This document shows, in pieces, positions 1 to 64,000 of a DNA stretch of 64,000 bases. Origin of the DNA: Malacoraja senta (taxonomy: Eukaryota). The stretch spans positions 35,278,001 through 35,342,000 of the forward strand of contig CM075984.1 in assembly GCA_038087875.1 (NCBI GenBank). The letters are read 5' to 3'. Position numbers and translations under genes: made by a program. Each line of letters starts with the position of its first letter. Within the stretch, counting starts at the first letter, position 1. A model generated the notes under the pieces. It did no database searches and had not been told where the DNA came from. It saw only the letters and a program-made list of their open reading frames with translations.

Positions 1-2481
1 AGACTGGACACTTTATGCTCAAACTCCTCAGCCCTAATCCACTGCTGGCTGTCATAGTAATGAGATGGCACAGTAATGATGTACACCCACTAGCATCTTG
101 TGAAAGAGGTTAGTGTGTGCACTTAAATTATTTTCATGCTTTCAATTGTTTATCACCAATTTCAGGTCAGTTTAATTGAATTAAGTCATGTCGTAAGTCA
201 TGTGATGTCATGTTATGTCATAAGTCATGTGATAGGAGTAGAATTAGGCCATTCGGCCCATCAAGACTACTCCGCCATTCAATCATGGCTGATCTATCTC
301 ACCCTCCTAACCATATTCTCTTGCCTTCTCCCCATAACCTCTGACACCTGTACTAATCAAAAATCTATCCATCTCTGCAAGAAAAATAAAATTTGGCCTC
401 TACAGCCTTCTGTGGCAAATAATTCCACAGACTAAAGAAATTTCTCCTCTTCTCCTGAAAGGACGTTCACCTTTAATTCTGAGACCATGACCTCCAGTCC
501 TAGACTCTCCCACTGGGGGAAACATCCTCTCCGCATCACTCTATCCAAACCTTTCACTATTCCATTATGTTTCAATGAGGTCCCCACTCATTCTCCTAAT
601 TTACTTTAACTTTTTAAAAAAGAATTGCTTAAGTTCTCTTGAATGGCTCTGACAATCTATTTAACAATTTTCAGAGGCCTACAACAGCAGTGACCTGCAC
701 ATTGGGTGCCTCTCAGGCACAAAGGTGAACTCAACCAAACCCCTGTACCCTTAGGAGATTAGCATAGGTGGTGCACAAGCAGAGGGGACAGATCCAGGTT
801 GATTGGGTCAGGTCCTTTAATTCCACTCGCCCCTTTAACTATTGCCACCCAGATTGGAGACTGCATTGCTCCAGTTGTTCCTTGGTGCGGTCAACAAAAA
901 AAGCCAAGTGATGCCTGTTGTTCTAATGTTTAGGAAGTGAACAAAGCTAAATGTGGCAGTGTTAGGAATCTACCATTGATTGATTGATACTTTATTTTAA
1001 AGTGTACTTGACACAGTGAAATTCTTTGTTTTGCATACAGTACACAAGTATGCAAAGAGTCGCCACGTAAAGGGTGCTGACAAAGTTACAAAACTATTCA
1101 ATGTAGTCCCTCTTCCTTCTCCCTTTCTCCCCCCCCCCCCCCAACACCGGGTCCCACTTTGTTCTCAGCACCCCCCCCCCCCCCACAATGGGGCCCTCTT
1201 TGTGCTCGGCGCCACTCCTCTGTTGACCGCCAACACTCACGTGGGCAACAACACCACTGTTTTGATTATAATTCTGTGTCTCCAAACATAATTATCTAAT
1301 TAAACATTGTGTTCAAACTCTATTTGTATGATATTTCCACTAAAGGGATGGACCGTTGCATAGCTTTGCTCATCCCTCCACGTTGCTAAGGCCTGCAGGT
1401 TGCTGTGAGGCTTGCGTTCGGTGCTGATCACCTGATTGGTCTCAGCCTCTCAGATAATCACAGTAAGTTGCCTGATTTCAGCATTTGTGACAATTCGCAT
1501 CTGCTGTGCAAAAGAAAAGCCTGACTGTGCCCACCGAGATACAGCAGTCCGAAGTATGGCGGGAAGGAAGACCATTGCCAAGTGACTTTGCTGCAGTAAT
1601 GATTCGAGTGCGATAGGTACTGACGATCAGTTTTGTAAATACAGTAGATTAACTGCTGCAGTTGCCTGAAGGTGCGTCTCTTTTGATCGCTGAACAGCAC
1701 AGTAAAACCGGTGGAATCAGCAGAGCTGCTGCCGGATTCATTTGCAAGGCTGACACAGGGAACTGCACCATAAAAAAGGATAAGGAATTTCCAATCTTTG
1801 GACTCTGAGACAGAGCAGATCTGATCCATTGATTGCTAGTTTTAATGCTGTCAATCTGCCAATCGATCCAGACAGGTACCATTCTTGCTTTGGATAATAG
1901 ATGTCTAGGATTAAATCTAATCACCACAAGCTGGCAACAACAATACTGAGTGATTTGCCCTTTCAGAGTTTAATATGATTATCGGGACCTTATTATAGAA
2001 TCACATTTAATTACCCATGAGAATTTTGTGGGGAATCTGTTTTCACCGTGGGGTGTTTCTTTATTAGTACTCAGTGAAAAATCTGAAAGCCTATTATTAT
2101 GACTATGGTCTGGTGTTCAAAGTAACAGCCGTAACATGGTTGAGTTGTTTCTGAGAGTTTAGTTGCAGTTTCCCTATTTTGAATAGATACCTGGCACCTC
2201 GGCAACAGGGTTACAAGGAAAATACGGAAAGGTGGAATAGGACTGATTGGATTAGACTGATTGGATTGCTCTGTTGGGAGCTGGCATAGATGCAATGGGC
2301 CAATTGGCCTCCTGTGTAATAATAATAATTTCCCTTTAGCACAGCCAAGAACGGAAACAAATGCCGGCCGATTTCTGTGTATTTATTTGTCATTACCCCT
2401 CTAAAAGAATTTCTACAATGGTGTGTCAAAATTTAGAACTGATCTACCCTATCAAAACCTTTTGCTGAACTGAAAACTGCA
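1..2481 (+). repeat. Large direct duplication, copy A
   Basis: Nearly identical to 61523-64000 (offset 61522, then 61519 after a poly-C length difference). The same spurious ORFs appear twice in the ORF track. Confidence 0.98.
218..600 (-). mobile_element. CR1 LINE 3' fragment (also duplicated at ~61740-62120)
   Basis: ggagtagaattaggccattcggccca..ccttctgtggc..gtcctagactctcccact, the reverse CR1 3' end. Confidence 0.75.
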
Positions 2482-7171: not shown

Positions 7172-7770
7172 AACATGAAAACATAGAAACATAGAAAATA
7201 GGTTCAGGAGTAGGCCATTCAATATGATCATGGCTGATCATCCAACAGTATCCTGTACCTGCCATCTCTCCATACCTCCTGATACCTTTAGCCACAAGGG
7301 CCACATCTAATTCCCTCTTAAATATAGCCAATGAACTGGCCTCAACTACCTTCTGTGGCAGAGAATTCCAGAGATTCACCACTCTCTGTGTGAAAAATGT
7401 TTTTCTCATCTCGGTCCTAAAAGATTTCCCCCTTATCCTTAAACTGTGACCCCTTGTTCTGGACTTCCCCAACATCGGGAACAATCTTCCTGCATCTAGC
7501 CTGTCCAACCCCTTAAGAATTTTGTAAGTTTCTATAAGATCTCCCCTCAATCTTCTAAATTCTAGCGAGTACAAGCCAAGTCTATCCAGTCTTTCTTCAT
7601 ATGAAAGTCCTGACATCCCAGGAATCAGTCTGGTGAACCTTCTCTGTACTCCCTCTATGGCAAGAATGTATTTCCTCAGATTAGGAGACCAAAACTGTAC
7701 GCAATATTGCAGGTGTAGTCTCACCAAGACCCTGTACAACTGCAGTAGAACCTTCCTGCTCCTATACTCA
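7172..7770 (-). mobile_element. CR1 LINE 3' fragment (RT C-terminus plus (tttctatg)n tail)
   Basis: ORF 7116-7739 has [57 protein letters not shown]. Confidence 0.93.
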
Positions 7771-7921
7771 AAGAAAGGAAAACTAATATGGATGCAAAGT
7801 CACCGAAACACAATGATCAATGAGCGAGACACACAGCGTGGAGTAATACAATACAATACATACAATACCATTTATTGTCATTTGAACCTCAAATGAAGTT
7901 CAAACAAAATTTGGTTTCGTT

Positions 7922-8127
7922 TGCTAACCCAGCGGGTCAGGCAGCATCTGTTGAGGGGAAAAAATGTGTACGAAAGAACTGCAGATGCTGGTTTAAATCG
8001 AAAGTAGACACAAAATGCTGGAGTAACTCAGGGGGACAGGCAGCCTCTCTGGAGAGAAGGAATGGGTGACGTTTCGGGTTGAGACTGAATGCGTCAAAAA
8101 CATTTCGGATCAGGACCCTTCTTCAGA
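7922..8127 (-). mobile_element. Penelope-terminal-repeat copies (nested)
   Basis: gaactgcagatgctggtttaaatcg...gtgacgtttcgggt and catttcggatcaggacccttcttcag. Confidence 0.75.
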
Positions 8128-11580: not shown

Positions 11581-11714
11581 AGGTTTGAAGCAGGGTCTTG
11601 ACCCGAAACATCACCTAATCCTTTTCTCCAGAGATGCTACCTTACCCACTGAGTTACTCCAGCATTTTGTGTCTATCTTCGGTGTAAACCAGCATCTACA
11701 GTTCCCTCCTACAT
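11581..11714 (+). mobile_element. Penelope-terminal-repeat copy
   Basis: aggtttgaagcagggtcttgacccgaaacatcacct...cagcatctacagttcc. Confidence 0.75.
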
Positions 11715-12261
11715 ATTCCATTTTTATATCACCTTTGCAGAATCCACAGTATTTTACTGCGATATTATGTATGAGTGAGTCAAGCATAATTGAAAGAACA
11801 GCGGAAAGTAATTTAAAATTCATGTACTAAACTTACAAGAACATTCCAGCCTCATTTCATTTGAATCGTGTCACAGTTATTATCTGCCTATTTTTATATA
11901 TCAGCACAACTTGTTAAATGCCAATGCAGTTATCCAGACGAATGGATAATTAGGTAAAATGCTCTTTTTTTTGTAGTTCATTTGTTAAACCTCTGTGCAG
12001 CATTTAATAACTGCAATTCCTTAAATTATATTTCTTCTGAGGAGCTTCCTTTCTCATGAAGATTAACACATATTAAGACTAGTTAGTAGAAGTAATGTAC
12101 AGGTTAAATTGTTTGTGTGTTACTGCACATTGATATGCATCCCAATCTGTCTCCCTGTTGAATATCATGAAGAGTCGTTTATTTCCAGCAGATAACTTAG
12201 ATGCCGACATGTTAAAGTGGTTTCTGGAGGTTTTGTTTTTGCTTCCAATGTGTTGTCCAAT

Positions 12262-15370: not shown

Positions 15371-15631
15371 TGGATGAAAGAAACAGTTACTCTCAAAGGG
15401 ATCTGTGGACATTTATTTATATTCAGCTATTACTTATATTATGAAGCTTTCCATCCATCCTATTTATGAATAATTACATTATTATTATTCATTTTCCTTC
15501 ATGTTCTTGAATACTTTGACACTCGTCAATGTGACAGTGTTCATTGAATCTTCACTTTCCAGTTTCATTGCTTTCTCCAACACAAGGAATGCAGTTCCAG
15601 GCAATGTTAATGAAGTTAGATGAACAAGACA

Positions 15632-15753
15632 AAGGATCTTGACCCGAAACGTCACCTATTCCTTCTCTCCAGAGATGCTGCCTGTCCCGCTGAGTTACCC
15701 CAGCTTTTTGTGTCTATCTTCGGTTTAAACCAGCATCTGCAGTTCCTTCCTAC
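15632..15753 (+). mobile_element. Short Penelope-terminal-repeat insertion (5'-truncated inside the hammerhead core)
   Basis: Sequence gacccgaaacgtcacctattcc...gcatctgcagttcc, flanked by TSD acaagaca (15624-15631 / 15754-15761). Confidence 0.75.
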
Positions 15754-16039
15754 ACAAGACAGAGGACTGTTGCAGACAGTGCCTCAGGTGCAGAGGAATT
15801 TACAATTCATTTTGTTTTTATTAAATATTTTCAATATTAACCATTAATTCTAATATTTTAAATGTTTAATAAAAATGAAAAATATTGTAAATCTTAACCA
15901 TTAGTGAGAGGAGGTGATGAGGGGGGGGGAGAGGAGAGTATTACCTGCTGATTTATTCCTCTTGTCTTGAGAGGTGAGTTATTGGAGAAGACTGGACAAT
16001 GTTCCATTACTCCATCCTATTGACAATGACCTCTCAGAA

Positions 16040-16970: not shown

Positions 16971-17150
16971 CTCATCAGCGATGGCAGTGTGGTATATGCA
17001 GAGGCCCTCTGGGACCATATCACCATGGATGACCAGGAGCTGGGCTTCAAAGCTGGTGATGTCATTGAAGTAGTGGATGCGACGAACAAAGAGTGGTGGT
17101 GGGGGCGGATTGTGGACAGTGAAGGCTGGTTCCCTGCCAGCTTTGTGCGG
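16971..17150 (+). CDS. ARHGEF4: ARHGEF4 (Asef) SH3-domain exon, 180 bp, phase 0-0
   Basis: Acceptor ttccttgcag| and donor |gtaaga. Encodes [60 protein letters not shown], nearly identical to the Asef SH3 as recalled ([34 protein letters not shown]..), and closer to it than to ARHGEF9 (LITGDS..MANRELAF). Confidence 0.93.
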
Positions 17151-17210
17151 GTAAGAGCTGATACAGGTTGGGGCAATGACAGGACACAAAGAGGGCCAAG
17201 CAATATCAAT

Positions 17211-17374
17211 AAACCAAATACATACACAAAAACCTGGAGTAACTCAGCGGGACAGGCAGCATCTCTGGAGAGAAGGAATGGGTGACGTTTCAGGTCGAGA
17301 CCCTTCTTCAGTCTGAACTCCAGCTTTTTGCGTCTATCTTCGGTTTAAACCAGCATCTGCAGTTCCTTCTTACA
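17211..17374. mobile_element. Short Penelope-terminal-repeat insertion with internal inversion; hammerhead-like core on - strand (17281-17311)
   Basis: 10-bp TSD caatatcaat (17201-17210 / 17375-17384). The minus strand reads ctgaagaagggtctcgacctgaaacgtcacc. Confidence 0.8.
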
Positions 17375-18147: not shown

Positions 18148-18342
18148 TTGTGGGTCAACCAGGATGAACCCATGGAAGAATATCCTGTGAAGGTGGAAGA
18201 TGGGAAACTTGATGACCCCAACAGTGCTAATCGTTGCCTGGCCAAAGGCCAGTCAAAGAAAGACCAAATGAGGACGAATGTCATCAGTGAGATCATGAGC
18301 ACTGAGAATGATTACATCAAACACTTAAAGGATATCTGTGAG
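18148..18342 (+). CDS. ARHGEF4: ARHGEF4 SH3-DH linker / DH start exon, 195 bp
   Basis: Acceptor cctaaag| and donor |gtaagg. Encodes LWVNQDEP...[30 protein letters not shown], the first DH helix. Confidence 0.92.
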
Positions 18343-19744: not shown

Positions 19745-19925
19745 GGTTATGTTAAGCAATGCCGTAAAAGGGACAGACATGTTCACAGAAGAACAGCTAC
19801 GCACCATTTTTGGGAACATTGAAGACATCTACAGATTCCAGAAAAGGTTTCTGAAAGACCTGGAAAAGAAATTCAACAAAGATGAGCCCCATCTGAGTGA
19901 GATTGGATCCTGTTTTCTTGAATTT
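19745..19925 (+). CDS. ARHGEF4: ARHGEF4 DH exon with an apparent 1-bp insertion (181 bp where 180 is needed)
   Basis: Acceptor ttccctacag| and donor |gtgagt. GYVKQCRKR is in one frame and (T)[50 protein letters not shown] is in the +1 frame; the shift is at aaaagggacagac (~19770-19773). Confidence 0.9.
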
Positions 19926-20094
19926 GTGAGTAATTTTAGCCGTTCCTCTAAAGAAAGCATTGAAGCAAATGGTATTTGTTTTACAAATAATCGTTATTTT
20001 TGTTCTTTTAGCCTTTGAATCAGATATTCTGAGATATTAGAAGAACTCACATGTCCTCTGGGGGCTGGGACCAAAGTGAACCCATTTCTGAGGA

Positions 20095-20334
20095 TAGACT
20101 CAAAAAGCTGGAGTAACTCAGCGGGTCAGACAGCATCTCTGGAGAAAAGGAATAGTGATGTTTCGAGTCAAGATCCTTCTTTAGACTGAGTCAGGGGAAA
20201 GGGAAGTGAGAGATATAGATGGTGACGCAGCGAGATATAGAACAAATGAATGAATGATATGCAAATAACCCACTGAGTTGCTCCAGCTTTTCGTGCCTTT
20301 CTTCGGTTTAAACCAGCATCTGCAGTTCCACCCT
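20095..20334. mobile_element. Short Penelope-terminal-repeat insertion with internal inversion
   Basis: 15-bp TSD acccatttctgagga (20080-20094 / 20335-20349). An antisense piece of the repeat is followed by a sense piece. Confidence 0.82.
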
Positions 20335-20409: not shown

Positions 20410-20501
20410 CAGGCAGATTTCCAGATATATTCAGAATACTGCAACAACCATCCTAATGCTTATGCAGAGCTCTCCAAACTCATGAAGATCAACAAATATG
20501 T
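20410..20501 (+). CDS. ARHGEF4: ARHGEF4 DH exon, truncated by the assembly gap
   Basis: Acceptor cttttccag|. Encodes [30 protein letters not shown](V) and then runs into Ns. Confidence 0.9.
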
Positions 20502-20701
20502 NNNNNNNNNNNNNNNNNNNNNNNNNNNNNNNNNNNNNNNNNNNNNNNNNNNNNNNNNNNNNNNNNNNNNNNNNNNNNNNNNNNNNNNNNNNNNNNNNNN
20601 NNNNNNNNNNNNNNNNNNNNNNNNNNNNNNNNNNNNNNNNNNNNNNNNNNNNNNNNNNNNNNNNNNNNNNNNNNNNNNNNNNNNNNNNNNNNNNNNNNNN
20701 N
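20502..20701. other. Assembly gap (200 N)
   Basis: Exactly 200 N, a round placeholder length typical of a scaffold join. Confidence 0.99.
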
Positions 20702-21006
20702 CCCCATTTTTACTGACATGATTATATTAAATTTAAAATTATATTATTTTTTATATTAAAAAAAGGTTGTACTGCCACATAATGCAGACGTTGAGATAAA
20801 GGAGACTGATAATATTACAGGTGGAAGTCCGTGATCTTGGTGATAATGAGGTGTCAAATTGGGATTATAAACACTTATGATCCCCATTGAGTGGGGTATG
20901 GGTTAATAAAGTTGAGAAATGGAGTTGGTGACCCAAATCATGCAATTATTTCCAAATGCAAATGGTTACACCATCGTTCCATTGGAGCCCAATAATACTC
21001 TTGACT

Positions 21007-21150
21007 GTAGAAACAAAGAACTGCAGATGCTGGTTGATTGGTTGTCTTAAACAGGTAGACAAAAAGTGGTGGAGTAACTCAGCAGGCCAGGTAGCATCTC
21101 TGGAGAAAAAGGATAGATGATGTTTCAGGTTTGGACCCTTCTTCAGACAG
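21007..21150 (-). mobile_element. Penelope-terminal-repeat copy
   Basis: gaactgcagatgctgg...gatgtttcaggtttggacccttcttcagac. Confidence 0.72.
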
Positions 21151-21217
21151 ATACATTTGACCGTTGTTTAAAATATCCACCCTTACCAATGACAGCATTA
21201 TCAAAAGGAAAATAAAT

Positions 21218-21327
21218 CTTCCTATATTGTTGGGAACTAATTGAGTTCACAGTGCTGGAATATAAAGCAAACTTCCTATATTGTTGGGACTAATTGAGTT
21301 CACAGTGCTGGAATGTAAAGCAAACTT
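21218..21327 (+). repeat. Tandem duplication, 2 x ~54 bp
   Basis: cttcctatattgttggg(a)actaattgagttcacagtgctggaat(a/g)taaagcaaa occurs twice. Confidence 0.92.
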
Positions 21328-22094
21328 ACACTGCGTAACAAATAATCTTTTAAACCAAACATTAGCTTATCAAGAGGTAATTACTGGCATGCATTACCTC
21401 AAGACATTTTAGTCCTTTGCAGGCAGATTAATTTCAGGGATGCTGAATTTATAGGCATATCAGGCAATAGCACAATATTAACTGAAGCCATTCTATACCA
21501 CATCGAGCTAGAGAAATTAAAACAATGATGGTCCATTAGTACTTTTCGACACAATTAGTTTAAACTGGAAGAAGGGAAGAGGATAGTTAAAATCAACATG
21601 GGGTTTCATGATGATTGTTTCATTACAAATCCATCTGACTCAAATATACGCTGAATTTCCTATCTCTAACAACGTCATACTGGATTGGAACATCATGTTT
21701 AATTCCCTGTCAAATTACATCATTAAACATGTCTAGCGTGACTTTTCTGTGAGAATAACATAAGCAAATTCATGTGCAAAATAAGGAGGAATTACTATTT
21801 ATATTCATTATTTTGAAGGACATTATTTGGTTGGCGAGGCATTGATTCATCTGCTCAGATTCACTCCCCATCACCTTCCTTTGTATTGCTCATCAAATGT
21901 CCACTCAAACAAGAGTCCTGCCACTCACCACCTGCCTACTCCAGAGTAATGTCACTGATTTCATATTCATTTTCAGTTCCTTATTTTTATCTCCTCAGTG
22001 CCTGAACAGAGAGACTCATAGTAATGAATATTGAGTGGACATAGTGAACTACTGACCTATCCATGTTCAAAATTTCCAAGTTACATTATAGTCA

Positions 22095-22337
22095 TATAGC
22101 AACTCAATTTTACCTAGCTGTGAGCTACTATCTACCTCTTTGATGACCCTTGGACTATCCTTGATTGGACTTTGCTGGCTTTACCTTGCACTAAACGATA
22201 TTCCCTTATCATGTATCTGTCTACTGTAAATTGATCGATTGTAATCATGTATTGTCTTTCTGCTGACTGGTTAGCACGCAACAAAAGCTTTTCACTGTAC
22301 ATCGGTACGTGACAATAAACTGAACTGAACTGAACTG
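22095..22337 (+). mobile_element. LINE 3' tail (Rex1/Babar-like); a related reverse fragment lies at ~22605-23090
   Basis: Ends cactgtacatcggtacgtgacaataaa(ctgaa)n. The clade assignment is from memory of tail type only. Confidence 0.5.
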
Positions 22338-24334
22338 CAATGGAAATAGAACAATGACCAAGATTTCAGTCAAAGTGCTGGTTCTATGATGGCTCATGAT
22401 TAGTTAGGGAGTGTGTTTCAGAGCGAGAGACCTCTGAAGGCAACAACTAATTCTCTGTTCAGCTGTCAATGGCTGTGTCCTTGCACTGCACATTGTTTAA
22501 ATACTTAATTTCCATTTTAGGAATAGCTTCTTAAACAAAATGTGCAATATTCACCTTCTGCTTCTTGGTCTAACCAAAATTGCCTTGGAAACATCTGGTA
22601 AAATATTTAGTTTAGTTTATTATTGTCACATGTACCGAAGTACAGGAATAGCATTTGTTTGCTTGCTATCCAGTCAAAGACTATACATAAATACAATCAT
22701 GCCATACACAGTGTACAAATAAAGGATAAAGGGTACACCATTTTATGCAAGATAAAGTTCGATAAAGTCCAATTAAAGATAGTTTAAAGGTCTCCAATGC
22801 AGTAGATGGGAGGTCAGGGCTGCACTCTAGTTGATGCGAGGACTGTTCAGTTATTTGATGAAACTGGGATGGGCTGAGATGAAACTGTCTCTGAATCTGG
22901 AGATATGCATTTTCAAATATCTTACTTCTTGTCTGATGGAAGAACGGTGAAGAGGGAGTGATCAGAGTGAGACTTGATTATGCTGGTAGCCTTGCCAAGG
23001 CAGCATGAAGTGTAGATTGAGTCAGTGGAAGGGAATTTGGTTTGCGAGATGGTCTGGGCGACGTCCACAATTCTCCGCTATTTCTTGTGGTATTTAATAT
23101 CCAGCCCACTACAGTGATGTTATCTGTGAACTTGTAGATTGTCTTTCACCCATAGAAAATTCATCTTGCAACCTCAACTTCAAATTTGGAATTTTATTAT
23201 GGATTAGCAAAGAGCCATCCGTTCTGGATCAGCTTGAATTTTGATTGCTTGGCTTGCTTTAATGCCATTATGGATATTTTAAGTTGTTCAACTTTTTCAG
23301 TTCTCAAATGGAAGAAAAATAGTTCAAATAATGCATATGAATTCCAGATATGCAAAACATATGTCCTAAACATTTTTTTTTTAAACTCAGCCTTCAAGGT
23401 CTTTGCTTTTGGGTTCTACTTCATTTTCATTTCAAGTTTCTTGTTATAGCTCTCATTCAAATATAATGTTTAAAGGAACAAATATGTACAGGAGCAGCAA
23501 GTAATTTGGATGGGATGAAATCATGTCCAAAAGGAAGGAGAGAATTGGAAAACTGTTCAGGTCAATCATTTAAGGTTGAAAGTACAGGTAGCCACTGAAT
23601 TTGGAAAGGGCAAGGATGACTACTAAGAGTTTTGGAACCAGTGCTTTAAGGTTCAATAACCTTAAATGGGGTTGATGGAAGATGACAAAGAAAAAAAGAG
23701 GCTTTCACTAATATAGCACTTCCTGGATATCCAAATCAGTAAATGAGGTTTGTTTCAATTGTAGCTCAGGTCATTCACCAAAGAAGGGCACTATTGAGAC
23801 CACAAACCCCTGGAACAATCTTGTTTTAACATACTGAAATGAGTGGAGTTTATTTTATGCTCAAGCTGCAGACAAGGGAATAGTTTTCACTTTTGATGCA
23901 ACCTCATTTGCACTGCAATTTATACTTGCCCAATATTTGCCTGGAATCTTGTTGAGAATATGACCACATTGCTTCAAATATCAATCCCCCGCCAGCTGAG
24001 TTGAAGGAACATTGCAACTCTAACTTAGTGTTCAATTAAATTTACTTGTATTTGACTTGTTTGCTCGGGGCATCACTGTGTCACCTAAATTAGTGTTTGG
24101 CAATTACTCACTTGTTTCAACTGAATAAAGTGTATCCTGCTCAAAATGATAGATAATAGAAGTGTCATTGTAGCTCAAGTGCATTTGTAACATTGCGTTG
24201 TCACATCTGGCAATTGTGGGATTTTTCCATGTGACCAGCTCCTTGTGCATGTGTGCATTTGCCTCTACAGTGACAATATTTGGTGAGAGGTTGCTTAAAG
24301 TCTGTCGTTGTTGATAAAGCTATTGTTTCTGTAT

Positions 24335-24757: not shown

Positions 24758-25119
24758 AATCCTATATAAAGAAATACTGAAATATATTTATGTATATTGT
24801 TTCTGTAATTTCTCTATTACAATGTATTGCACAACAATGTAAATAAACCAACCAAAACGTCACCTGTCCATTTTCTCCAGAGATGCTGGCTGACCAGCCG
24901 AGTTATTCCAGCACTTTGTGTATTGTGTATTAACCAGTATATGCAGTTCCTTGTTTCTAAATTTGTAATTAAAGTAAATTGTTAGATTGAAGTTTTGTTG
25001 ACAAGAAAAATTCATTCATCAAAGATCATATTTTTGTGGGATCCCTAAGTTCAGCCCGTAATAACACATGAATGTGAGACATTATCTCCGTTAACCTTCA
25101 GAATGATTAAACCAGTCAG

Positions 25120-27722: not shown

Positions 27723-27752
27723 ATTTACTAGATAGACAATGTGACAGACAAC

Positions 27753-39584: not shown

Positions 39585-39790
39585 AGGACACAAAATGCTG
39601 GTAACTTAGCATATCATGCAACATCCCTGGAGAATGCGGATAAATGACGTTTCAGGTTTGCGCCCTTCTTCATACTGACCCGGAAAGTCACCTATCCATG
39701 TTCTTCTCCAGCGATGCTGCCTGACCTGCTCAGTTCCTCCAGCACTTTGCTTCTTTTATTGTAAACCAGCGTCTGCAGTTCCTTGCTTTC
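39585..39790. mobile_element. Inverted pair of Penelope-terminal-repeat pieces
   Basis: An antisense copy ending cccttcttcatactga is immediately followed by the sense copy cccggaaagtcacctatcc...tctgcagttcc. Confidence 0.7.
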
Positions 39791-40700: not shown

Positions 40701-40840
40701 TCATCAATGATGGCGCCCTGGATAAGAGTGCGTTTGCTGATGAAGCTGGCAGTGAAGAGGATTTGTATGAGGAGTATCGGAGTGGGAATCACAGATATGG
40801 GCATCAAGGAGGAGGTGGAGAGCAACTGGCCATCAATGAG
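40701..40840 (+). CDS. ARHGEF4: ARHGEF4 APC-binding-region exon (140 bp, phase 1-0); not in the ORF track
   Basis: Acceptor cacaatgcag| and donor |gtaaaa. Encodes xINDGALDKSAFADEAGSEEDLYEEYRSGNHRYGHQGGGGEQLAINE, matching Asef DGALD..DEVGSEEDLY..GGGGEQLAINE, which directly precedes LISDG of the SH3 exon. Confidence 0.92.
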
Positions 40841-43140: not shown

Positions 43141-43643
43141 TCAATTTGAGGAAGGACATCCTTGCTATTGAGGCAGTGCACGAGGTTAATCCCCGGGATG
43201 GCGGGACTGTCATATGAGGAAAGATTGGAAAGACTGGGCTTGTATTCACTGGAATTTACAAGGATGAGAGGGAATCTCATAGAAACATATAAAATTTAAA
43301 AAGGACTGAACAAGCTAGATGCAGTAAAAATGTTCCCAATGTCGAGGAAGTCCAGAATCGGGGGTCCACAGTCTAAGAATAAAGGGGAGACCATTTAAAA
43401 CTGAGATGAGAAAAAACGTTTTCACCCAGAGGGTTGTGAATTTGTGGAATTCTCTGCCACAGAAGGCAGTAGAGACCAATTCACTGGATGAATTTAAAAG
43501 AGAGTTAGATAGAGCTCTAGGGGCTAGCGGAATCAAGGGATATGGGGAGAAGGCAGGCATGGGTTACTGATTGTGGATGATCAGCCGTGATCACAATGAA
43601 TGGCGGTGTTGGCTCGAAGTGCCAAATGGCCTCCTCCTGCACC
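43141..43643 (+). mobile_element. CR1 LINE 3' fragment inserted into an older SINE-like repeat (~42963-43830)
   Basis: YEERLERLGLYSLEF..RVVNLWNSLP motifs and a tttctatgtttctatg tail. Confidence 0.88.
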
Positions 43644-45725
43644 TATTTTCTATGTTTCTATGTTCACTGATGGGAGGATAGCTGCCCTCCTTTCACAGTC
43701 TGGTGAGAATATGACACCACCCCACCATAGTAGAGGTCGCTTAACTGCATTCTCAGTTCAGGGACAATCAAAGATGGACAATAAATGTCAGGATTGCCAG
43801 TGATGTTCATATCCTGTGAATTAATGAAATAAGTAAGCAGGCTAATCAGCCAATCACTGTGAAGATGTCTTATGAGCATCAAATCCGAGCAAATATCTCA
43901 TAGTTTTAACTTTATTTGGCTTTCTGTGAATTGTTAAAGAGAGGATTGCCACTATCTCATGAAATCTGACATTTTCTCATGTAAATTGTCCCTAGTGTGT
44001 GTAGGATAATGTCAGTGTGCGGGGATCGCTGGTTGGAGCAGATTCGGTGGGCCAAAGGGCCTGTTTCCGCGCTGTATCTCTAAACTTAACAAAAACGAAG
44101 TACTTGCTACTGCAGCGTAGGTTAATGCTGAGATAAACTTCTGGATTTCCATGTTTGACTGTGCATGTGTAGACGCCAGAGGTCGCTGTCAGTTTCAGTG
44201 GGTAATGAGGTGAACCCTGACAGTTTCATCATGATTGTAACTACAGAATTGCAGGTCATTGACGGAAAATAAACCTGTTGTGTATGAAATGGATGGTTTA
44301 TTCGCCACTATCCACCTTAAGATGCTGTGTAATTTCAAGATTAACCTTATTATTTCTTGCTCCTGCACTATGGTACTTTTCTGGCTAGCAGTCTGCAAGG
44401 TACTTGACTAAGTCCTGCTGTTCGGTCTTGATGGTAGCGATGTTCTGTAAGATAATTAGAGTAGGTGAATTTGGCCAGTTGCCCATCTTTCTGATGTTTG
44501 CTTCTGAAGTAGTAGCAATATTTTTGAAAAAGGCAAATGCCCATAATTTTTTGTGCACACACTCTTGTAGTTTCTTAGATAACAAAACAGGTTATTTATA
44601 CAAGAACCAAAACTATAACTGCACGTTATCAGGATTTAAAAGTGAAAACCACTTGTCCAAGGAACTTTTGAGCAATTGCTTGGCGTCTTTTTGCTTGGCC
44701 TCTTTAGATTGGGAATGCAGACATTTTATTCAGTCCTCTGTGGGTTAAATCAGACAATTTTCCCCTCTCCACCAGCTAATCAAAAAAATAATGTTTCTTA
44801 AAAATAAACAAGGCAGTGAAGCAGTTAACACATGTGTGACCACTAGTCTTTAGTCTTAAAACAAAATGCCTTCTAACCTTCCTTCGTTCTCTACCCCCGC
44901 CCAGTACCGCCTCCTCTTCCCCACCCTCCATTCACCCCATCACTGAATAAAAGAATAGACTGAGGTTCAGAATGTCAAGTTAAGAGCTGCTGGAATCGGC
45001 ACTTGCCTTCGGAACTGTATTGTAACAAACACTGTTGTTTCCCCCACGCTCTGGTAGGCAGTGTCTTGATCTCTGCCTCACAGGGGTCCAAGGCAGCAAT
45101 CAAGGCAGTTACATCGATTGGCATTTTAATAAAGGGCCGAGTGTCCATAATTGTGTGCAAAGCTGTGCTTGCGAGAAAGGGAAAAAAAACGCTATTAGTT
45201 TCCATTGCCACAAATAGGAGAGCAATCAAGGCATTGACAGTAAGTGGGCGAGAATGATTTTTAAAATCTACTGCAAATGCTTTAAGTACTGATTTTTTCC
45301 CCTCCATTATTGTAATGTGGTCTCCACTGACATTTTGTCATAGTGTCATGCTTGTGAATGGAGAATATTGTTGATTCTCTTGCAGCTGCGGTGTCTCAAG
45401 TTGTTGCTTTATTGTGGTTGCATTTCCAATGTTCATGCAGAATTGCAGCTGTTAAAATTAGATCTCCAATTTTATCTTTATCTTTTTTTGTATTTTTGGT
45501 GGATTTGACATTCACCCAAATGAAGGCAGTTATGGAAAGAAAGATTTGCCGGAACTTTAATTGCCTAGCAATAAGTTTTAACAGCTGTGCAATTGAAAAT
45601 ATATATTTATTTCCAGAGTGAAATTTGCTGAAAGCCATTTTCATATCATTTTGTGTCAATGCGGAAGTGCAACTGGGTACTTCCAGGATTGGCACACCAG
45701 CTTTAAATGTGCATATTATTATGTA

Positions 45726-47213: not shown

Positions 47214-47981
47214 CATAGATACATAGATAGATACATAGAAAATAGGTGCAGGAGTAGGCCATTCGGCCCTTCGAGCCTGCACCGCCATTCAATATGATCA
47301 TGGCTGATCATCCAACTCAGTATCCCGTACCTGCCTTCTCTCCATACCCCCTGATCCCTTTAGCCACAAGGGCCACATCTAACTCCCTCTTAAATATAGC
47401 CAATGAACTGGCCTCAACTACCCTCTGTGGCAGAGAGTTCCAGAGATTCACCATTTGTGTGAAAAATGTTTTTTTCATCTCGGTCTTAAAGGATTTCCCC
47501 CTTATCCTTAAGCTGTGACCCCTTGTCCTGGACTTCCCCAACATCGGGAACAATCTTCCTGCATCTAGCCAGTCCAACCCCATAAGAATTTTGTAAGTTT
47601 CTATAAGATCCCCTCTCAATCTCCTAAATTCTAGCGAGTATAAGCCGAGTCTATCCAGTCTTTCTTCATATCAAAGTCCTGACATCCCAGGAATCAGTCT
47701 GGTGAACTTTCTCTGCACTCCCTCCATGGCAAGAATGTCCTTCCTCAGATTTGGAGACCAAAACTGTACGCAATACTCCAGGTGTGGTCTCACCAAGACC
47801 CTGTACAACTGCCGTAGAACCTCCCTGCTCCTATACTCAAATCATTTTGCTATGAATGGTAACATACCATTCGCTTTCTTCATTGCCTGCTGCAGCTGCA
47901 TTCCTACTTTCAATGACTGGTGTACCATGACATCCAGGTCTCGCATCTCCCCTTTTCCTAATCGGCCACCATTTAGATAAT
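47214..47981 (-). mobile_element. CR1 LINE 3' fragment
   Basis: ORF 47317-47619 RGDLIETYKI..TRGH..; highly similar to 7172-7770. Confidence 0.92.
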
Positions 47982-48400: not shown

Positions 48401-48927
48401 GCAATAGACAATAGACAATAGGTGCAGTAGGCCATTCGGCCCTTCAAGCCAGCACCGCCATTCAATGTGATCATGGCTGATCATCCGCAATCAGTACCCC
48501 TTTCCTCCCTTCTCCCCATATCCCCTGACTCCGCTATCTTCAAGAGCCCTATCTAGCTCTCTCTTGAAAGTATCCAGAGAACCGGCCTCCACCGCCCTCT
48601 GAGGCAGAGAATTCCACAGACTCACAACTCTCTGTGTGAAAAAGTCTTTCCTCATCTCCGTTCTAAATGGCTTACCCCTTATTCTTAAACTGTGGCCTCT
48701 GGTTCTGGACTCCCCCAACATCGGGAACATGTTTCCTTCCTCTAGCGTGGCCAAACCCTTAATAGTCTTATGCGTTTCAATAAGATGCCCTCTCATCCTT
48801 CTAAACTCCAGAGTATACAAGCCCAGCCACTCCATTCTCTCAGCATACGACAGTCCCGCCATCCCGGTAATTAACCTTGTAAACTTACGCTGCACTTTCT
48901 CAATAGCAAGAATGTCCTTCTTCAAAT
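48401..48927 (-). mobile_element. CR1 LINE 3' fragment, (tctattg)n tail subfamily
   Basis: ORF 48491-48925 carries CR1 RT C-terminal motifs. Confidence 0.9.
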
Positions 48928-49287
48928 TCCATAACTTTAGACATTAGTTAATGGATAATTGTTGACCGTAGGGTGAGGGTGACTATTGCAGAATCATTTA
49001 ACCTAGTTGAGAGAGCTGCTGAGGGCTCCATCTTAAACATTTATCCAAAAGATGTCAGCTCCAACAATATGCACTCCTCTGGTGCTGTGCTGTAGAATCA
49101 AGTTAGAATGTTTGTCCTGGATTGTCAACAGGGATGTGAAAGTGTTTCTAATGTGTCAAACCTACTTTTTTTTCAAACTTTATTCATTCCCGAGAGATGT
49201 GTCATTGGCACAACAAGCATTAATTGCCCAGTATTAATTCTGTGGCAAAGTAGCCATGAGCAACATTCCAGAATTCAGCGATCCTTA

Positions 49288-50162
49288 TGGGCCTGTCCCA
49301 CTTAGACGACTTTTTAAGCGACTGCAGGAGACTATGCAGTCACCACATGGTCACCACATGTTCGTGGGTTGTTGCCGGGGAGTCGCCTTCATGGTCGTGA
49401 GGAGTTCATGCATTCTGGGAACTAGTCGCGGCCTCATTATGGTTGGCGCAAATTTTTCAACATGTTGAAAATTTAGCGGCGACTAGAATGAAGCCGCCAT
49501 GGAGAATAGCGAGAATTCTCGTGCCGTAGATGGGTCGCCATGAGGTCCTAGTGGGTTGCCAGGAGGTCGAAGGATCTCGTAGGTTCTTGTAGGTTGTAGC
49601 CGGTGTTGACTGGTGAAATTCATTGGATCATTGGGGAAAAAAACCCGTAAGCAGTAGAACCAAGGATAACCAATGTTAATGTCCGCCGAGTTTCACAGCT
49701 GTGTATCTCTGGCTTCTTAAAAGTCATCTGGCTTCTTAAAAGTTGTCTCCACTCCTTCTCCCTCCTTCACGCTCCTTCTCCCTCCTTCTCCCTCCTTCTC
49801 CCTCCTTCTCCCTCCTTCTCCCTCCTTCTCACTCCTTCTCCCTCCTTCTCCACCCTTCTCCCCCCTTCTCCACCCTTCTCCCCACCCTCCCCCCCCTTTT
49901 AAAGGACTTACCGTACACTGTGCTTTAGCCGTCTTAATTACAGCGCTGACCTTCCTGTTCATCGTGGTGTGTGTCTGTATCAACTTGGCTTTGCACCGTG
50001 TGAATTTCAGACAGCGCTCCCCCCGCTTGCCCTGTCCCCGCCTTTGCGATGTGTGTTTCACTCTGACAGTCGCCGTTCCAGTTGCTGGTCTTTCAGGCGA
50101 CTGCCGGCAACGTGACAGTCGCCGGCAGATGCCTGAAAAATTGCTTAAGTGGGACAGGCCCT
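49288..50162. mobile_element. PIF/Harbinger-type MITE, 875 bp
   Basis: 16/17-bp TIRs (T/A)GGGCCTGTCCCACTTA and a TTA TSD (49285-49287 / 50163-50165). Internal (ctccttctcc)n tract at 49750-49895. Confidence 0.88.
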
Positions 50163-57054: not shown

Positions 57055-57744
57055 TGAAACATAGAAATATAGAAAATAGGTGCAGGAGTGGGCCATCCGG
57101 CCCTTTGAACCAGCACCGGCATTCAATATGATCACGGCTGATTATCCAAAATCAGTACCACGTTCCTGCTTTCTCCCCATATCGCTTGATTTCGTTAGCC
57201 CTAGGAGCTCTATCTAACTCTCTCTTGAAAACATCCAGTGAATTGGCCTCCACTGCCTTCTGTGGCAGAGAATTCCACAGATTCACAACTCTCTGGGTGA
57301 AAACGTTTTTCCTCATCTCAGTCCTAAATGGCCTACCTCTTATTCTTACACTGTGACCCCTGGTTCTGGACTCCTCCAACATCGGGAATTTTTTTCTTGC
57401 ATCTAGCCTGTCCAATCCCTTAAGAATTTTATATGTTTCTATAAAATCCCTTCTCATCCTTCTAAATTCCAGTGAATATAACCCCAGCCGATCATCATTC
57501 TTTCATCATATATCAGTCCCGGGATTTTACCTCGTGAAACTACGCTGCACTCCCTCAATAGCAAGAATGTACTTCCTCAAATTAGGAGACCAAAACTGCA
57601 CACAATACTCCAGGTGTAGTCTCACCAGGGCCCTGTACAACTGCAGTAGGACCTCCTTGCTCCTATACTTAAATCCTCTTGTTATGAAGGCCCACATGCC
57701 ATTTGCTTTCCTCACTGCCTGCTGTACCTGCATGCTTACTTTCA
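57055..57744 (-). mobile_element. CR1 LINE 3' fragment
   Basis: ORFs 57152-57457 and 57527-57790 (KANGM...[19 protein letters not shown]). Confidence 0.92.
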
Positions 57745-58029
57745 GTATGCATTGACACTGTAATTTTGGTTGTGCTGTTACGACTTTCACTCATTTATTT
57801 TTCCAGCATAATATTGCATTGTCAACTATCACCTGCCATGATGCTCTCATTGGTGTACCAAATAAATGGTGCAGGTCTGGATTTTTCACAATTATTTAAA
57901 ATGCTTGTTGAAAATAAAGGCAACCCTTTTTCTATATGTTTTCAAATATCCAAACTAATATTGAGAATAAGAAATATAAAGAAATGAAACCTGAGAAAAT
58001 TCACAAAAAATGTGATTGAATATTAAAAA

Positions 58030-58835
58030 ATAGAACAGTATTACAAAAGAACAGGCCCTTTGGCCCATGATGTTTGTGCTGCACAGGATGCCCATTCAAA
58101 CTAATTCCTTCTGCCTGCATATGATCCACATCATTCCATTTTGTGCATATTAACCTCCAATATGCTCTGAACTACAAAGACTTGGCGGCATCAGTTTTGT
58201 CTTTTTAATGATTACTGTTTGTTTGTTTTTACGTGTACGTATATGTGCTTGTGTGTATATAAATATATATATACATGTGTATATGTATGTATACATGTGT
58301 ATATGTTTGTATACATACACTGAACTTTTATTTACTTGTTTATTATATTGTATACAGTGTACTATGTTTACATATTGCTGCAAGTAAGAATTTCATTGTT
58401 CTATCTGGGACTCTTGATTATTCTTGACTCTTGACTTGATTATTGTGCCTATCTAAAAGCCTTTTAAATGCCACAGTATTTCCTGCTTCCACCACCACTC
58501 CTGGCAGCATATACCAGGCACCCACTACTTTCTTTAAAAAAAACTTGACCCGCATTTCTCCTTTAAGCTTTCTTCCTCTCACCTTACATCTGTGTCTGCT
58601 GAAATTTGACATTTCAACCATGGGGTAAAAGGTTCTGACTGCAATCCTATCAATACTTATCATAATTTTATGAAGTTCTATCAAGTCTCCCTCAGCCTCC
58701 GACACTCCAGAGAAAACAATCCAAGTGTGTCCAACCTCTGTGTAGTTAAAACCCACTAGTCCAGGCAGTATTCTGGTGAACCTTTTCTGCACCCTTTCCA
58801 GAACCTCCACATCCTTTCTATAATAGGGTGACTAG
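58030..58835 (-). mobile_element. CR1 LINE 3' fragment interrupted by a + strand retroposon tail (~58150-58440)
   Basis: ORF 58418-58810 LERVQKRFTRILPG..GDLI... The insert has TG/TA microsatellites and ends (tcttgac)n. Confidence 0.8.
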
Positions 58836-61039
58836 AAAAGCAGTGAACTATCTCACATTTTAATGGTTTCTCTGATCTTTTTTTATTTAAAGGCCTCAAC
58901 TCTCTTGAAAGCCCAAGATTGATGTTGTGCTCTGAGTTATGTGCTGGTTGAATGCAGATGGTGTGGTCTGAGCACGTTTCTTGATGTTTTGCCCAAAATG
59001 GTATAACTGTTCCTACTGTTATAAAACAATGTATTCACAGACAGACTGTGTTTTACTGTGAAAGACCTACCAGTGACGAATGAAGGAATGAGGCATGCCG
59101 TTAATCTGTCGGGATGCATCGGGCTGTGTTATTTTTAGGAATGAGATTCATGAAAATTCATCGCCTTTTTAAATCAAAGTTCCCAGTCCAAATGAATAAG
59201 TGTTCAATCCCGGATTTTCTTACTGGTTGCATCTTTGCCAATGCACCTTGAACAATACAAACACTGGTGGACATTATTTGAATGATCTGTAGATTTGAAT
59301 GATCTCCGAGACAACGATTCAATAAGGGTTCTGTAAAGCATTCTGGTTATTGAATAACGATGAAAGTGTTGGACGCAGTCAGTAGTAAGCTGCAAGGAAC
59401 TCCCAAAGACACAGAAGGAAGCCACTCAGCCCAGCTTGACCTCACTATCTCATTTCACCCATTTACTTTCGCACATTGCTTTCTCCTTTGCATTCTCATG
59501 GAAATTGCTCCTCTTTTACCCGCCACATGTTTGCCCCACTGGCAAACTACACTGGCAAATTTAACCTACCAATGCGTACGTCTTTGCGATGGTGCAGGAA
59601 ACTGGAAGACCCAGGACCCGCGATTGATGGGAGAACATGCAAACTCCACACAGTCAGAACCTGAGTTGGGGATCGTAACTGGGACTCTTGAGCTGTGCAG
59701 TAGCAGCACCAACTGCTGCAAGGTAGGGCTCCCCTCTGTACAGCTGGTATTTTCAAAATAAGTGCTTTATAGGGTTCTAGCTTATTGATTAAATAGCCTT
59801 GATTTTGTTTTATTTCGCTGGTACATATTTAACATGTACAAGAAGGGTAGTGCTGCAGAAGATTTTGAAAAATTGAATTTTGACAGCAAGATTCAGCACT
59901 CATGAAAGTACAGGGGCTGCAACACCGGTTGCACCGGACATGCTGCTATTACTGCAGAAAATCCATGGACTGAACGTATAACGTGCAATCGCTCCAGGTT
60001 TTACCATGGGGGGGCGGTGGTAAACAGGACGTTTCCGAGCAGAAATAATTCGGAGAATATTAATGCAGTTCTTTTGGACGCATGTATTTCATTCTGGCCT
60101 TGTATCAAATAATTTGATACACAGCCGTTGATCCTGTGTGGGAAAGGTACAACTTGTCTTTGTAAGTTGGCACACAAACATTCAGCTTTTATTAAATTCA
60201 GTGGGTTTGAAATTTGCTTCACTGTTTTTTAATAAAACCTCACTGCTGGTAATGTTTTGAGCTGAGTTATTACAGCAGGGTGGAGCCCATATGGTGTTAT
60301 TGAATCAAAGTTCCTGCAGTTGAAATCTTGGTACGTCTGAGTATATTAATGATGACCAACATTTATAAGGTAAAATGTAGAATTTTCATAGTGGCTGAAC
60401 CAAAATAAGATGTTCGGACAGGTGAATGAAAGCTTGGTTAAAGACGAAGACTTTATGAAGCCAGAGAGTCAGAGAGAATCCAGCACTTTGGACCAAGAGA
60501 ATTAAGGTACTGTGGGCACATGGTGGATTGAAGGAACAAATGGGTAGAGTTGGGGGACTGTAGATTCTTAGGAGGATTGTAAGACTGGAGGTGGTCAAAG
60601 GGACTGCATGGAACCAAATCAATGGAAGGATCTGAACATGAGGATGTGGATTTTAAAATAAATATGTTAGTGCCTCAGGAGCTAGTGCAGGATTTATGAG
60701 TGTAAATTTATGAACTGCTCTCAGGAACAGTACCCTATTGTAAACTGGGGATCTTCTGTCATTATGGCTTTCCCATGCACACGTGGTCTAGTATAGAAAT
60801 CTAAGAAGAACTGGCAACTGGGTGTATTCACAACTGAATCACCCAGCAGAAGGGCGGCACAGTGGCGCAATGGTAGAGTTGCTGCTTTACAGCACCAGAG
60901 ATCCGGGTTCAATCCTGACTATGGGTGCTGTCTGTATGGAATTTGTATGTTCTCTCTGTGGCCGCGTGGGTTTTCTCTGGGCGCTCCGGTTTCCTCCAGT
61001 TTCCTCCCATGCCTCAAAAGATGTACAGGTTTGTAGGTT

Positions 61040-61140
61040 GATCAGTCTGTAGAAGGGTTTCGGCCCAAAACGTTGCCTATTTCCTTCGCTCCATAGATGC
61101 TGCCTCACCCGCTGAGTTTCTCCAGCATTTTTGTCTACCC
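61040..61140 (+). mobile_element. 101-bp Penelope-terminal-repeat insertion nested in a V-SINE
   Basis: 14-bp TSD caggtttgtaggtt (61026-61039 / 61141-61154). Begins 7 nt before ctgtagaagggtttcggcccaaaacgtt. Confidence 0.82.
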
Positions 61141-61178
61141 CAGGTTTGTAGGTTAATTGTTTTCGGTAAAATTGTGAA

Positions 61179-61303
61179 ATGTCTGAGAGTGGGCTCAATT
61201 GGGGAGATCTGGAAAGAACTGCCAACAACCAAGTGAGGTGAAGGACATTTGTCAATGGCCTGTGTACGCTCCCTAGAGGAGCAAAGGGCTTAAGAAGAAG
61301 AAG
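61179..61303 (+). mobile_element. RTE-clade LINE extreme 3' end
   Basis: Encodes SGLNWGDLERTANNQVR*RTFVNGLC. Has an (aag)n tail and an 11-bp TSD aaaattgtgaa (61168-61178 / 61304-61314). Confidence 0.65.
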
Positions 61304-61522
61304 AAAATTGTGAATTGAATGAATGAATGAATGAATGTTTATTGGCCAATTATTCACATACAAGGAATTTGCCTTGGTGCTCCGCCCGCAAGTGAAAATG
61401 ACATACAGTGACTCTAGTTGTTTCTAGTGTGTAGGATAGTGCTGGTGTATGGGATGATTGCTGGTTGGCGCGGACTCGGTGGGCTGAAGAGCCTGATTCA
61501 GCGCTATATCTCTAAAGTCTTA

Positions 61523-64000
61523 AGACTGGACACTTTATGCTCAAACTCCTCAGCCCTAATCCACTGCTGGCTGTCATAGTAATGAGATGGCACAGTAATG
61601 ATGTACACCCACTAGCATCTTGTGAAAGAGGTTAGTGTGTGCACTTAAATTATTTTCATGCTTTCAATTGTTTATCACCAATTTCAGGTCAGTTTAATTG
61701 AATTAAGTCATGTCGTAAGTCATGTGATGTCATGTTATGTCATAAGTCATGTGATAGGAGTAGAATTAGGCCATTCGGCCCATCAAGACTACTCCGCCAT
61801 TCAATCATGGCTGATCTATCTCACCCTCCTAACCATATTCTCTTGCCTTCTCCCCATAACCTCTGACACCTGTACTAATCAAAAATCTATCCATCTCTGC
61901 AAGAAAAATAAAATTTGGCCTCTACAGCCTTCTGTGGCAAATAATTCCACAGACTAAAGAAATTTCTCCTCTTCTCCTGAAAGGACGTTCACCTTTAATT
62001 CTGAGACCATGACCTCCAGTCCTAGACTCTCCCACTGGGGGAAACATCCTCTCCGCATCACTCTATCCAAACCTTTCACTATTCCATTATGTTTCAATGA
62101 GGTCCCCACTCATTCTCCTAATTTACTTTAACTTTTTAAAAAAGAATTGCTTAAGTTCTCTTGAATGGCTCTGACAATCTATTTAACAATTTTCAGAGGC
62201 CTACAACAGCAGTGACCTGCACATTGGGTGCCTCTCAGGCACAAAGGTGAACTCAACCAAACCCCTGTACCCTTAGGAGATTAGCATAGGTGGTGCACAA
62301 GCAGAGGGGACAGATCCAGGTTGATTGGGTCAGGTCCTTTAATTCCACTCGCCCCTTTAACTATTGCCACCCAGATTGGAGACTGCATTGCTCCAGTTGT
62401 TCCTTGGTGCGGTCAACAAAAAAAGCCAAGTGATGCCTGTTGTTCTAATGTTTAGGAAGTGAACAAAGCTAAATGTGGCAGTGTTAGGAATCTACCATTG
62501 ATTGATTGATACTTTATTTTAAAGTGTACTTGACACAGTGAAATTCTTTGTTTTGCATACAGTACACAAGTATGCAAAGAGTCGCCACGTAAAGGGTGCT
62601 GACAAAGTTACAAAACTATTCAATGTAGTCCCTCTTCCTTCTCCCTTTCTCCCCCCCCCCCCCCAACACCGGGTCCCACTTTGTTCTCAGCACCCCCCCC
62701 CCCACAATGGGGCCCTCTTTGTGCTCGGCGCCACTCCTCTGTTGACCGCCAACACTCACGTGGGCAACAACACCACTGTTTTGATTATAATTCTGTGTCT
62801 CCAAACATAATTATCTAATTAAACATTGTGTTCAAACTCTATTTGTATGATATTTCCACTAAAGGGATGGACCGTTGCATAGCTTTGCTCATCCCTCCAC
62901 GTTGCTAAGGCCTGCAGGTTGCTGTGAGGCTTGCGTTCGGTGCTGATCACCTGATTGGTCTCAGCCTCTCAGATAATCACAGTAAGTTGCCTGATTTCAG
63001 CATTTGTGACAATTCGCATCTGCTGTGCAAAAGAAAAGCCTGACTGTGCCCACCGAGATACAGCAGTCCGAAGTATGGCGGGAAGGAAGACCATTGCCAA
63101 GTGACTTTGCTGCAGTAATGATTCGAGTGCGATAGGTACTGACGATCAGTTTTGTAAATACAGTAGATTAAATGCTGCAGTTGCCTGAAGGTGCGTCTCT
63201 TTTGATCGCTGAACAGCATAGTAAAACCGGTGGAATCAGCAGAGCTGCTGCCGGATTCATTTGCAAGGCTGACACAGGGAACTGCACCATAAAAAAGGAT
63301 AAGGAATTTCCAATCTTTGGACTCTGAGACAGAGCAGATCTGATCCATTGATTGCTAGTTTTAATGCTGTCTTTCTGCCAATCGATCCAGACAGGTACCA
63401 TTCTTGCTTTGGATAATAGATGTCTAGGATTAAATCTAATCACCACAAGCTGGCAACAACAATACTGAGTGATTTGCCCTTTCAGAGTTTAATATGATTA
63501 TCGGGACCTTATTATAGAATCACATTTAATTACCCATGAGAATTTTGTGGGGAATCTGTTTTCACCGTGGGGTGTTTCTTTATTAGTACTCAGTGAAAAA
63601 TCTGAAAGCCTATTATTATGACTATGGTCTGGTGTTCAAAGTAACAGCCGTAACATGGTTGAGTTGTTTCTGAGAGTTTAGTTGCAGTTTCCCTATTTTG
63701 AATAGATACCTGGCACCTCGGCAACAGGGTTACAAGGAAAATACGGAAAGGTGGAATAGGACTGATTGGATTAGACTGATTGGATTGCTCTGTTGGGAGC
63801 TGGCATAGATGCAATGGGCCAATTGGCCTCCTGTGTAATAATAATAATTTCCCTTTAGCACAGCCAAGAACGGAAACAAATGCCGGCCGATTTCTGTGTA
63901 TTTATTTGTCATTACCCCTCTAAAAGAATTTCTACAATGGTGTGTCAAAATTTAGAACTGATCTACCCTATCAAAACCTTTTGCTGAACTGAAAACTGCA
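61523..64000 (+). repeat. Large direct duplication, copy B (runs off the window end)
   Basis: Differences seen versus copy A: C14 vs C11 run, 1653C/63172A, 1700C/63219T, 1853-1854AA/63372-63373TT. Confidence 0.98.

Follow-up and report, generated by a model that had tools for sequence, protein, structure and literature searches.

Reordered ARHGEF4 exons around an assembly gap in a skate genome, probably a single-copy region represented twice

Gene content of the locus

We identified five exons of ARHGEF4, all on the forward strand, in the 64-kb stretch of DNA that was analysed (the window). The SH3 exon lies at 16,971-17,150 (LISDG...SFVR; 60 codons, phase 0 at both ends) and is supported by its splice sites, by Pfam (SH3_1, E=4e-11), and by PDB (Asef 3nmz_D, E=1.5e-34); 59 out of its 60 residues are identical to each of three skate ARHGEF4 proteins. 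It is followed by an exon that encodes a linker and opens the DH domain, at 18,148-18,342 (LWVNQ...KDICE), defined by protein matches and splice sites and identical to Leucoraja erinacea ARHGEF4 at 65/65 residues, by a second DH exon at 19,745-19,925, and by a third at 20,410-20,501 (QADFQIY...KINKY plus two bases; 2pz1_A residues 203-232), which is ended by the contig end: it stops mid-codon at 20,501, and the Amblyraja protein runs on past there. The fifth exon, at 40,701-40,840, encodes the APC-binding region (ABR) ending in ...GGGGEQLAINE. It was placed there by the original prediction, downstream of the SH3 and DH exons, and both the exon, with AG/GT splice sites, and its position were confirmed; it matches PDB 2dx1_A residues 15-60 (E=1e-13) and the ABR peptide of 3nmx_D, and is identical to the three skate proteins at 46/46 residues.

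The exons have the composition of an Asef-type exchange factor: the APC-binding region is directly N-terminal to the SH3 domain (2dx1_A residues 15-60, then 61-121), and the SH3 domain is followed by a Dbl-homology (RhoGEF) domain, according to both Pfam and PDB matches. The Pfam RhoGEF match follows SH3_1, in a DH reading frame that is broken by one extra base (see below); the PH domain is present in the full-length homologues (Pfam) and its position falls beyond the window. The nearest full-length proteins, from skates, rays, birds, and reptiles, are named arhgef4 or rho guanine nucleotide exchange factor 4, and on this ground the exons are assigned as putative orthologs of ARHGEF4, and not of SPATA13 or ARHGEF9. 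The large ORFs of the window were rejected as genes (none had a Pfam match). For a spurious 123-aa ORF that differs between the two copies of the repeat described below (V44M and Q59H), exact look-ups were blank and the protein search gave no hits; the exact look-up of the SH3 ORF was blank as well, and an Rfam scan of the whole window gave no match.

The second DH exon carries a +1 frameshift, a new observation that is absent from the original prediction. The exon is 181 nt long, where 180 nt are expected, with one extra base in the run AAAAGGG (19,766-19,772), and the frame breaks between ...CRKR and TDMF... At the protein level, it takes 9+1 residues in two frames to span residues 143-152 of 2pz1_A, the exon comes out of tblastn as two HSPs in different frames, and CRKRTDMF is unbroken in the ARHGEF4 of other skates. 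In a protein search with the frameshifted ORF, all matches belonged to other species and none was fully identical.

The assembly gap and the order of the exons

The only run of N in the window is a placeholder gap of exactly 200 N at 20,502-20,701. To its left are the SH3 exon and the three DH exons; to its right are 20 kb of non-coding DNA (20,702-40,700), and then the ABR exon. This non-coding stretch, the head of the right contig, has an AT-rich start, and tblastn with full-length homologues as queries found no match in it to any ARHGEF4 exon; in gene order it is the intron that precedes the ABR exon. The original prediction had the ABR exon splice directly to the SH3 exon, and this agrees with the two adjoining segments of 2dx1_A and with the three skate proteins, in which ABR and SH3 also adjoin. 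Since the ABR directly precedes SH3 in the protein, the right side of the gap must restart upstream, and the two flanks are not continuous; in gene order, the right side begins ∼57 kb upstream. The right contig was expected to restart at least 20 kb upstream of the ABR exon, and the distance is 20.0 kb, free of any downstream exon. By arithmetic from the exon positions, an ABR-SH3 intron of 37.6 kb is implied, and we infer a second SH3 exon near 78,490, beyond the window.

Near-identical sequence at the two ends of the window

The left end of the window (1-2,481), which lies within the ABR-SH3 intron, is repeated at its right end (61,523-64,000, same strand) with 99.7% identity and an offset of 61,522, by global alignment and by self-BLAST of the 64-kb window. 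The visible length of 2.48 kb is set by the window itself, which truncates the left copy at its start and the right copy at its end. No other self-match in the window comes close to it in strength; the runner-up matches in the same self-BLAST are interspersed repeats of 0.4-0.7 kb with 77-94% identity. The repeat had been described from the letters as differing by four substitutions and one change in the length of a poly-C tract, and this description proved exact: in the global alignment, the left and right copies have C/A at 1,653/63,172, C/T at 1,700/63,219, and AA/TT at 1,853-1,854/63,372-63,373 (a divergence of 0.16%), and the poly-C tract has 14 C in the left copy and 11 C in the right (the three extra C are at 1,171-1,173). 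The substitution sites are in ordinary, non-repetitive sequence, and the three substitution events are confined to 202 bp (1,653-1,854), a clustering with a chance probability of ∼0.02.

We also looked up words from the two copies in a k-mer index. The runs that best held the right-copy stretch were X19 (0.78) and X20 (0.61), either of which may be of another species than the window's. Neither was among the holders of seven sampled words with left-copy alleles (from 1,623-1,730), a result that refers to contigs rather than reads, and to Logan contigs, which lose minor variants. Five out of the seven words are held by the runs of many other organisms, and the chance that those five all miss both variant sites is 0.003. 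Because these words are widely held, and X19 and X20 are not holders, the left-type letters look ancestral, as far as the indexed words tell, and are unseen in X19 and X20.

Interpretation of the apparently doubled exons

The apparent doubling and misorder of ARHGEF4 is most likely an assembly artefact, whatever its form. Within that, the reading we favor, with a probability of roughly 0.65, is that a single-copy stretch of ARHGEF4 is represented twice, by two contigs that a scaffolder joined across a 200-N placeholder. The same ∼61.3 kb of genome (the offset of 61,522 minus the 200 N) would then most likely be covered once by the left contig's tail and once by the right contig's head, and slight differences would have kept the two from being merged; they could stem from the two parental haplotypes, or from separate consensus sequences built on one mixed pile of reads. 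The scaffold would read, in order, SH3, the DH start, the gap, the intron before the ABR, the ABR, the 37.6-kb intron, and the inferred second SH3 and DH. We infer that the repeat extends over the entire tail of the left contig, of which the window displays 2.48 kb out of the supposed 61.3 kb, and that the animal carries only one copy.

Several observations support an artefact. The copies are near-identical and on the same scaffold, with a gap in between; the gap does not join neighboring sequence, as the left side stops mid-codon and the right side restarts upstream; and the three skate ARHGEF4 proteins are single and colinear. In addition, what differs besides the substitutions, the poly-C tract (C14/C11) and the additional base within AAAAGGG, is in both cases a change in homopolymer length, the usual type of error in the consensus of long reads. 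On the other side, colinear proteins in other skates are compatible with a lineage-specific duplication, and the +1 frameshift could be the mark of a real, decaying copy. The original prediction preferred a false haplotypic duplication: its structural reading of the exon order stands, and its preference for a false duplication agrees with published criteria, the weak k-mer result, and the colinear skate proteins, but “haplotypic” is unproven. Two consensus sequences from a single mixed pile of reads, or two swapped contigs with a short overlap of their ends, would look the same within the window.

Such a swap of contigs is an unlikely form of the artefact, but it is the better of the two remaining explanations. 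Hi-C scaffolders often misorder small neighboring contigs; here, the right contig would belong before the left one, with their ends overlapping by a few kb, no large doubling, and no SH3 exon near 78,490. Placing right before left restores the order of ABR, intron, SH3, and DH without any long duplication, just 2.48 kb of repeat is in view, and duplications of about a read length occur at contig boundaries (Rhie et al., 2021, PMC8081667). However, the repeat reaches both ends of the window with no sign of ending, and a left contig that starts just before base 1 of the window would be a coincidence.

Slightly less probable still is a real and recent tandem duplication of ∼61.5 kb (younger than about 1 million years, as a rough estimate). 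It would have taken in the exons for the ABR and for SH3 together with the first DH exons, leaving two copies of the autoinhibitory ABR-SH3 module and of the beginning of DH; the upstream partial copy would be frameshifted and disabled, and the assembly would have broken at the junction. Near-identical tandem repeats that are real also break assemblies, the four clean substitutions are possible differences between two gene copies, and the frame-breaking extra base in the left copy is as in a decaying copy. But the gap would have to coincide exactly with the junction of the copies, the copies are very little diverged (0.16%), left-type words are absent from the two best-holding runs (a weak argument), and none of the three skate ARHGEF4 proteins has the doubling. 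That the gap is a true adjacency with only exon letters missing was rejected, as the right side restarts upstream by tblastn.

If the doubling is an artefact, models of ARHGEF4 built on this assembly will come out chimeric or doubled, or will be flagged as low quality; if it is real, the locus would be a modest case of an autoinhibited GEF that was partly duplicated in one lineage.

Comparison with known proteins and with published assembly errors

The human Asef/ARHGEF4 structures (PDB 2dx1, 2pz1, 3nmz, and 3nmx) have the same order of ABR, SH3, and DH in the protein. The end of the skate ABR (...GGGGEQLAINE) and the start of the skate SH3 (LISDG) correspond to residues 60 and 61 of 2dx1_A, where the two proteins are alike, and the skate DH exons match residues 84-232 of 2pz1_A; the skate counterparts of the rest of DH and of the PH domain fall outside the window. 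For the linker and first DH exon, ARHGEF9 (collybistin) scores higher than human ARHGEF4. A further difference from human Asef is that the skate gene encodes a long isoform of ∼2,500 aa, like other skates; the gene for the long isoform of ARHGEF4 in L. erinacea spans 326 kb. The skate proteins used here (L. erinacea XP_055502117.1, Amblyraja radiata XP_032887302.1, and Rhinoraja longicauda XP_078266866.1) each have one colinear ABR, SH3, and DH, and differ from the five exons of the window by two to four residues in total per species; all three have G or A where the window has V in GRI(V)DSEGW. On these differences, an origin of the window in any of the three species was rejected, and it belongs to a different skate species or individual.

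False duplications, either heterotype or at contig boundaries, are known in long-read assemblies (Rhie et al., 2021, PMC8081667; Ko et al., 2022, PMC9516828). The signs by which Ko et al. (2022) recognize them comprise near-identical copies on one scaffold around a gap, about half the read depth on each copy, haplotype-specific (1-copy) k-mers at the differences, and discordant or absent molecules across the junction; the first of these is what we observed (99.7% identity at an offset of 61,522). For a heterotype case, 0.16% is little divergence, so that an overlap left unmerged, with both contigs built on one mixed pile of reads, is just as possible. What the locus has in common with the published false duplications is two near-identical copies on one scaffold with a gap between, and an apparent partial gain of a gene with its exons out of order.

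ARHGEF4 exons and their order

We found only five exons in the window with full-length homologues as tblastn queries, and every coding piece is on the + strand. The SH3 exon (16971-17150, LISDG...SFVR) matches Pfam SH3_1 and human Asef (E=1.5e-34) and has clean AG/GT sites; it is followed by a linker/first DH exon (18148-18342, LWVNQ...KDICE), a second DH exon (19745-19925), and a third DH exon (20410-20501, QADFQIY...KINKY plus two bases), the end of which is also the end of the contig, in the middle of a codon. The exon for the APC-binding region (ABR) is located at 40701-40840, ends in ...GGGGEQLAINE, and matches residues 15-60 of the human Asef chain 2dx1_A (E=1e-13), as well as the ABR peptide of 3nmx_D. 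Residue 60 of 2dx1_A is the last one covered by the ABR exon and residue 61 the first covered by the SH3 exon, with matching phase 0, so the two exons are immediate neighbours in the protein. Among PDB chains, the linker/first DH exon was closer to ARHGEF9 (collybistin; E=1e-19) than to human ARHGEF4 (E=2e-13), whose linker seems to have diverged.

The closest full-length proteins are long-isoform ARHGEF4 (~2,500 aa) of Leucoraja erinacea, Amblyraja radiata, and Rhinoraja longicauda, and of other rays, sharks, and tetrapods. The five exons together differ from each skate protein at just 2-4 residues, which makes the gene in the window the orthologue of ARHGEF4 from a different skate species or individual. 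The ABR-SH3-DH order is colinear in all three skates, and the gene spans 326 kb in L. erinacea. The SH3 residue at 17110-17115 (codon GTG, in GRIVDSEGW) is Val, but Gly in L. erinacea and A. radiata and Ala in R. longicauda and Pristis; it is the sole residue of the five exons absent from all compared skates.

A gap between discontinuous contigs

The window contains a single N run, at 20502-20701 and exactly 200 bases long, and its two sides are discontinuous: on the left the sequence breaks off within a DH exon, and on the right it begins 20.0 kb upstream of the ABR exon, in non-coding DNA that is AT-rich. No exons downstream of the third DH exon were found in 20702-40700 by tblastn with full-length homologues. 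The original prediction that the right contig restarts 20 kb upstream was borne out, since the next exon is the ABR exon, which precedes SH3 in the protein; we judge its structural inference to be sound.

Global alignment showed that 1-2481 and 61523-64000 are the same apart from four substitutions (C/A at 1653, C/T at 1700, and AA/TT at 1853-1854) and one poly-C length change (three extra C at 1171-1173 in the left copy, C14 against C11 in the right), in exact agreement with the original prediction; as the repeat touches both window ends, its visible length is a lower bound. The three substitution events lie within 202 bp of one another; clustering this tight would arise by chance with a probability of ~0.02. 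If the offset of 61,522 holds beyond the window, position 82023 of the right contig would correspond to the last base of the left contig, a second SH3 exon would be expected near 78490, and the ABR-SH3 intron would be ~37.6 kb.

This is the only long near-identical pair in a self-BLAST of the window; the remaining self-matches are interspersed repeats (0.1-0.7 kb, 77-94% identity). One family of ~0.4-0.7 kb has six copies at 77-94% identity (7214-7772, 24335-24750, 43143-43664 on the reverse strand, 47227-47912, 48404-48928, and 57061-57744), and the ORFs inside it have no Pfam match. A short element of ~100 bp, without tRNA or Rfam matches, occurs in many copies at 82-95% identity (7965-8085, 11586-11717, 15628-15757, 17210-17317, 20090-20203, 27751-27872, 34512-34626, and others). 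Tandem repeats are present at 37454-37777 and 49746-49882: degenerate ones rich in G and A, and an array, (TCTCCCTCCT)n, with 13.6 copies.

A frameshift in the second DH exon

At 181 nt, the second DH exon exceeds the expected 180 nt by one: GYVKQCRKR and TDMFTEEQL... are in separate frames, with one extra base between them in AAAAGGG (19766-19772). In the numbering of the human Asef chain 2pz1_A, exactly ten residues separate ...DICE (142) from DMF (153), and the window gives 9+1 across the shift. CRKRTDMF is intact in the three other skates, whereas the frame is broken in the left contig, the only one seen here, as the right-hand counterpart exon falls outside the window. Either an error in the consensus or a real lesion could account for the extra base.

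Origin of the doubling

Most likely, the animal itself does not carry this doubling. We favour, with a probability of roughly 0.65, overlapping or redundant contigs: two contigs, either alleles or redundant assembly, would overlap by ~61.3 kb (the period minus the 200 N) and have been placed end to end. An unlikely alternative is that the contig order was swapped and the ends alone overlap, over a short length. A real, recent partial tandem duplication is slightly less probable again, and the single colinear ARHGEF4 protein of other skates argues against it. Beyond the four substitutions, the left copy carries two changes in homopolymer length: C14 versus C11, and one base too many in AAAAGGG. 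Consensus errors from long reads are usually of this kind, although a decaying copy could also acquire such changes. Some other origin has only a small share of the probability.

A k-mer index of sequencing runs was also consulted. Two coded runs, X19 and X20, held 0.78 and 0.61 of the words (k-mers) of 58001-64000, but are absent from the listed holders of the left-allele stretch 1623-1730. Five of the seven words sampled there are held by runs of several other organisms, among which this 108-bp stretch is unusually well kept. With 62 of its 78 possible words spanning a variant site, the chance that all five held words miss both sites is 0.003; thus the left-type letters are probably ancestral, common to relatives, and unseen in the two best-matching samples. 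This is what segregating alleles predict, rather than fixed differences between two real copies, and it points weakly that way, seven words having been sampled from runs whose contigs drop minor variants and whose species are coded. For a 6-kb intronic stretch, runs labelled with seven or more further organisms contain ~0.2-0.3 of its words, which fits related skates ~4% diverged. Exact ORF look-ups and two protein searches, made to probe for the alleles, gave blank or uninformative results.

In practice, duplicates should be purged and depth checked before any gene model close to a 200-N gap of this assembly is used. Among false duplications in long-read assemblies, Rhie et al. (2021; PMC8081667) report ones at contig boundaries with a size close to the read length. 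Near-identical copies on one scaffold with an assembly gap between them are among the marks of false duplication described in Ko et al. (2022; PMC9516828), and the copies at this locus are likewise near-identical, on one scaffold, and separated by a gap.
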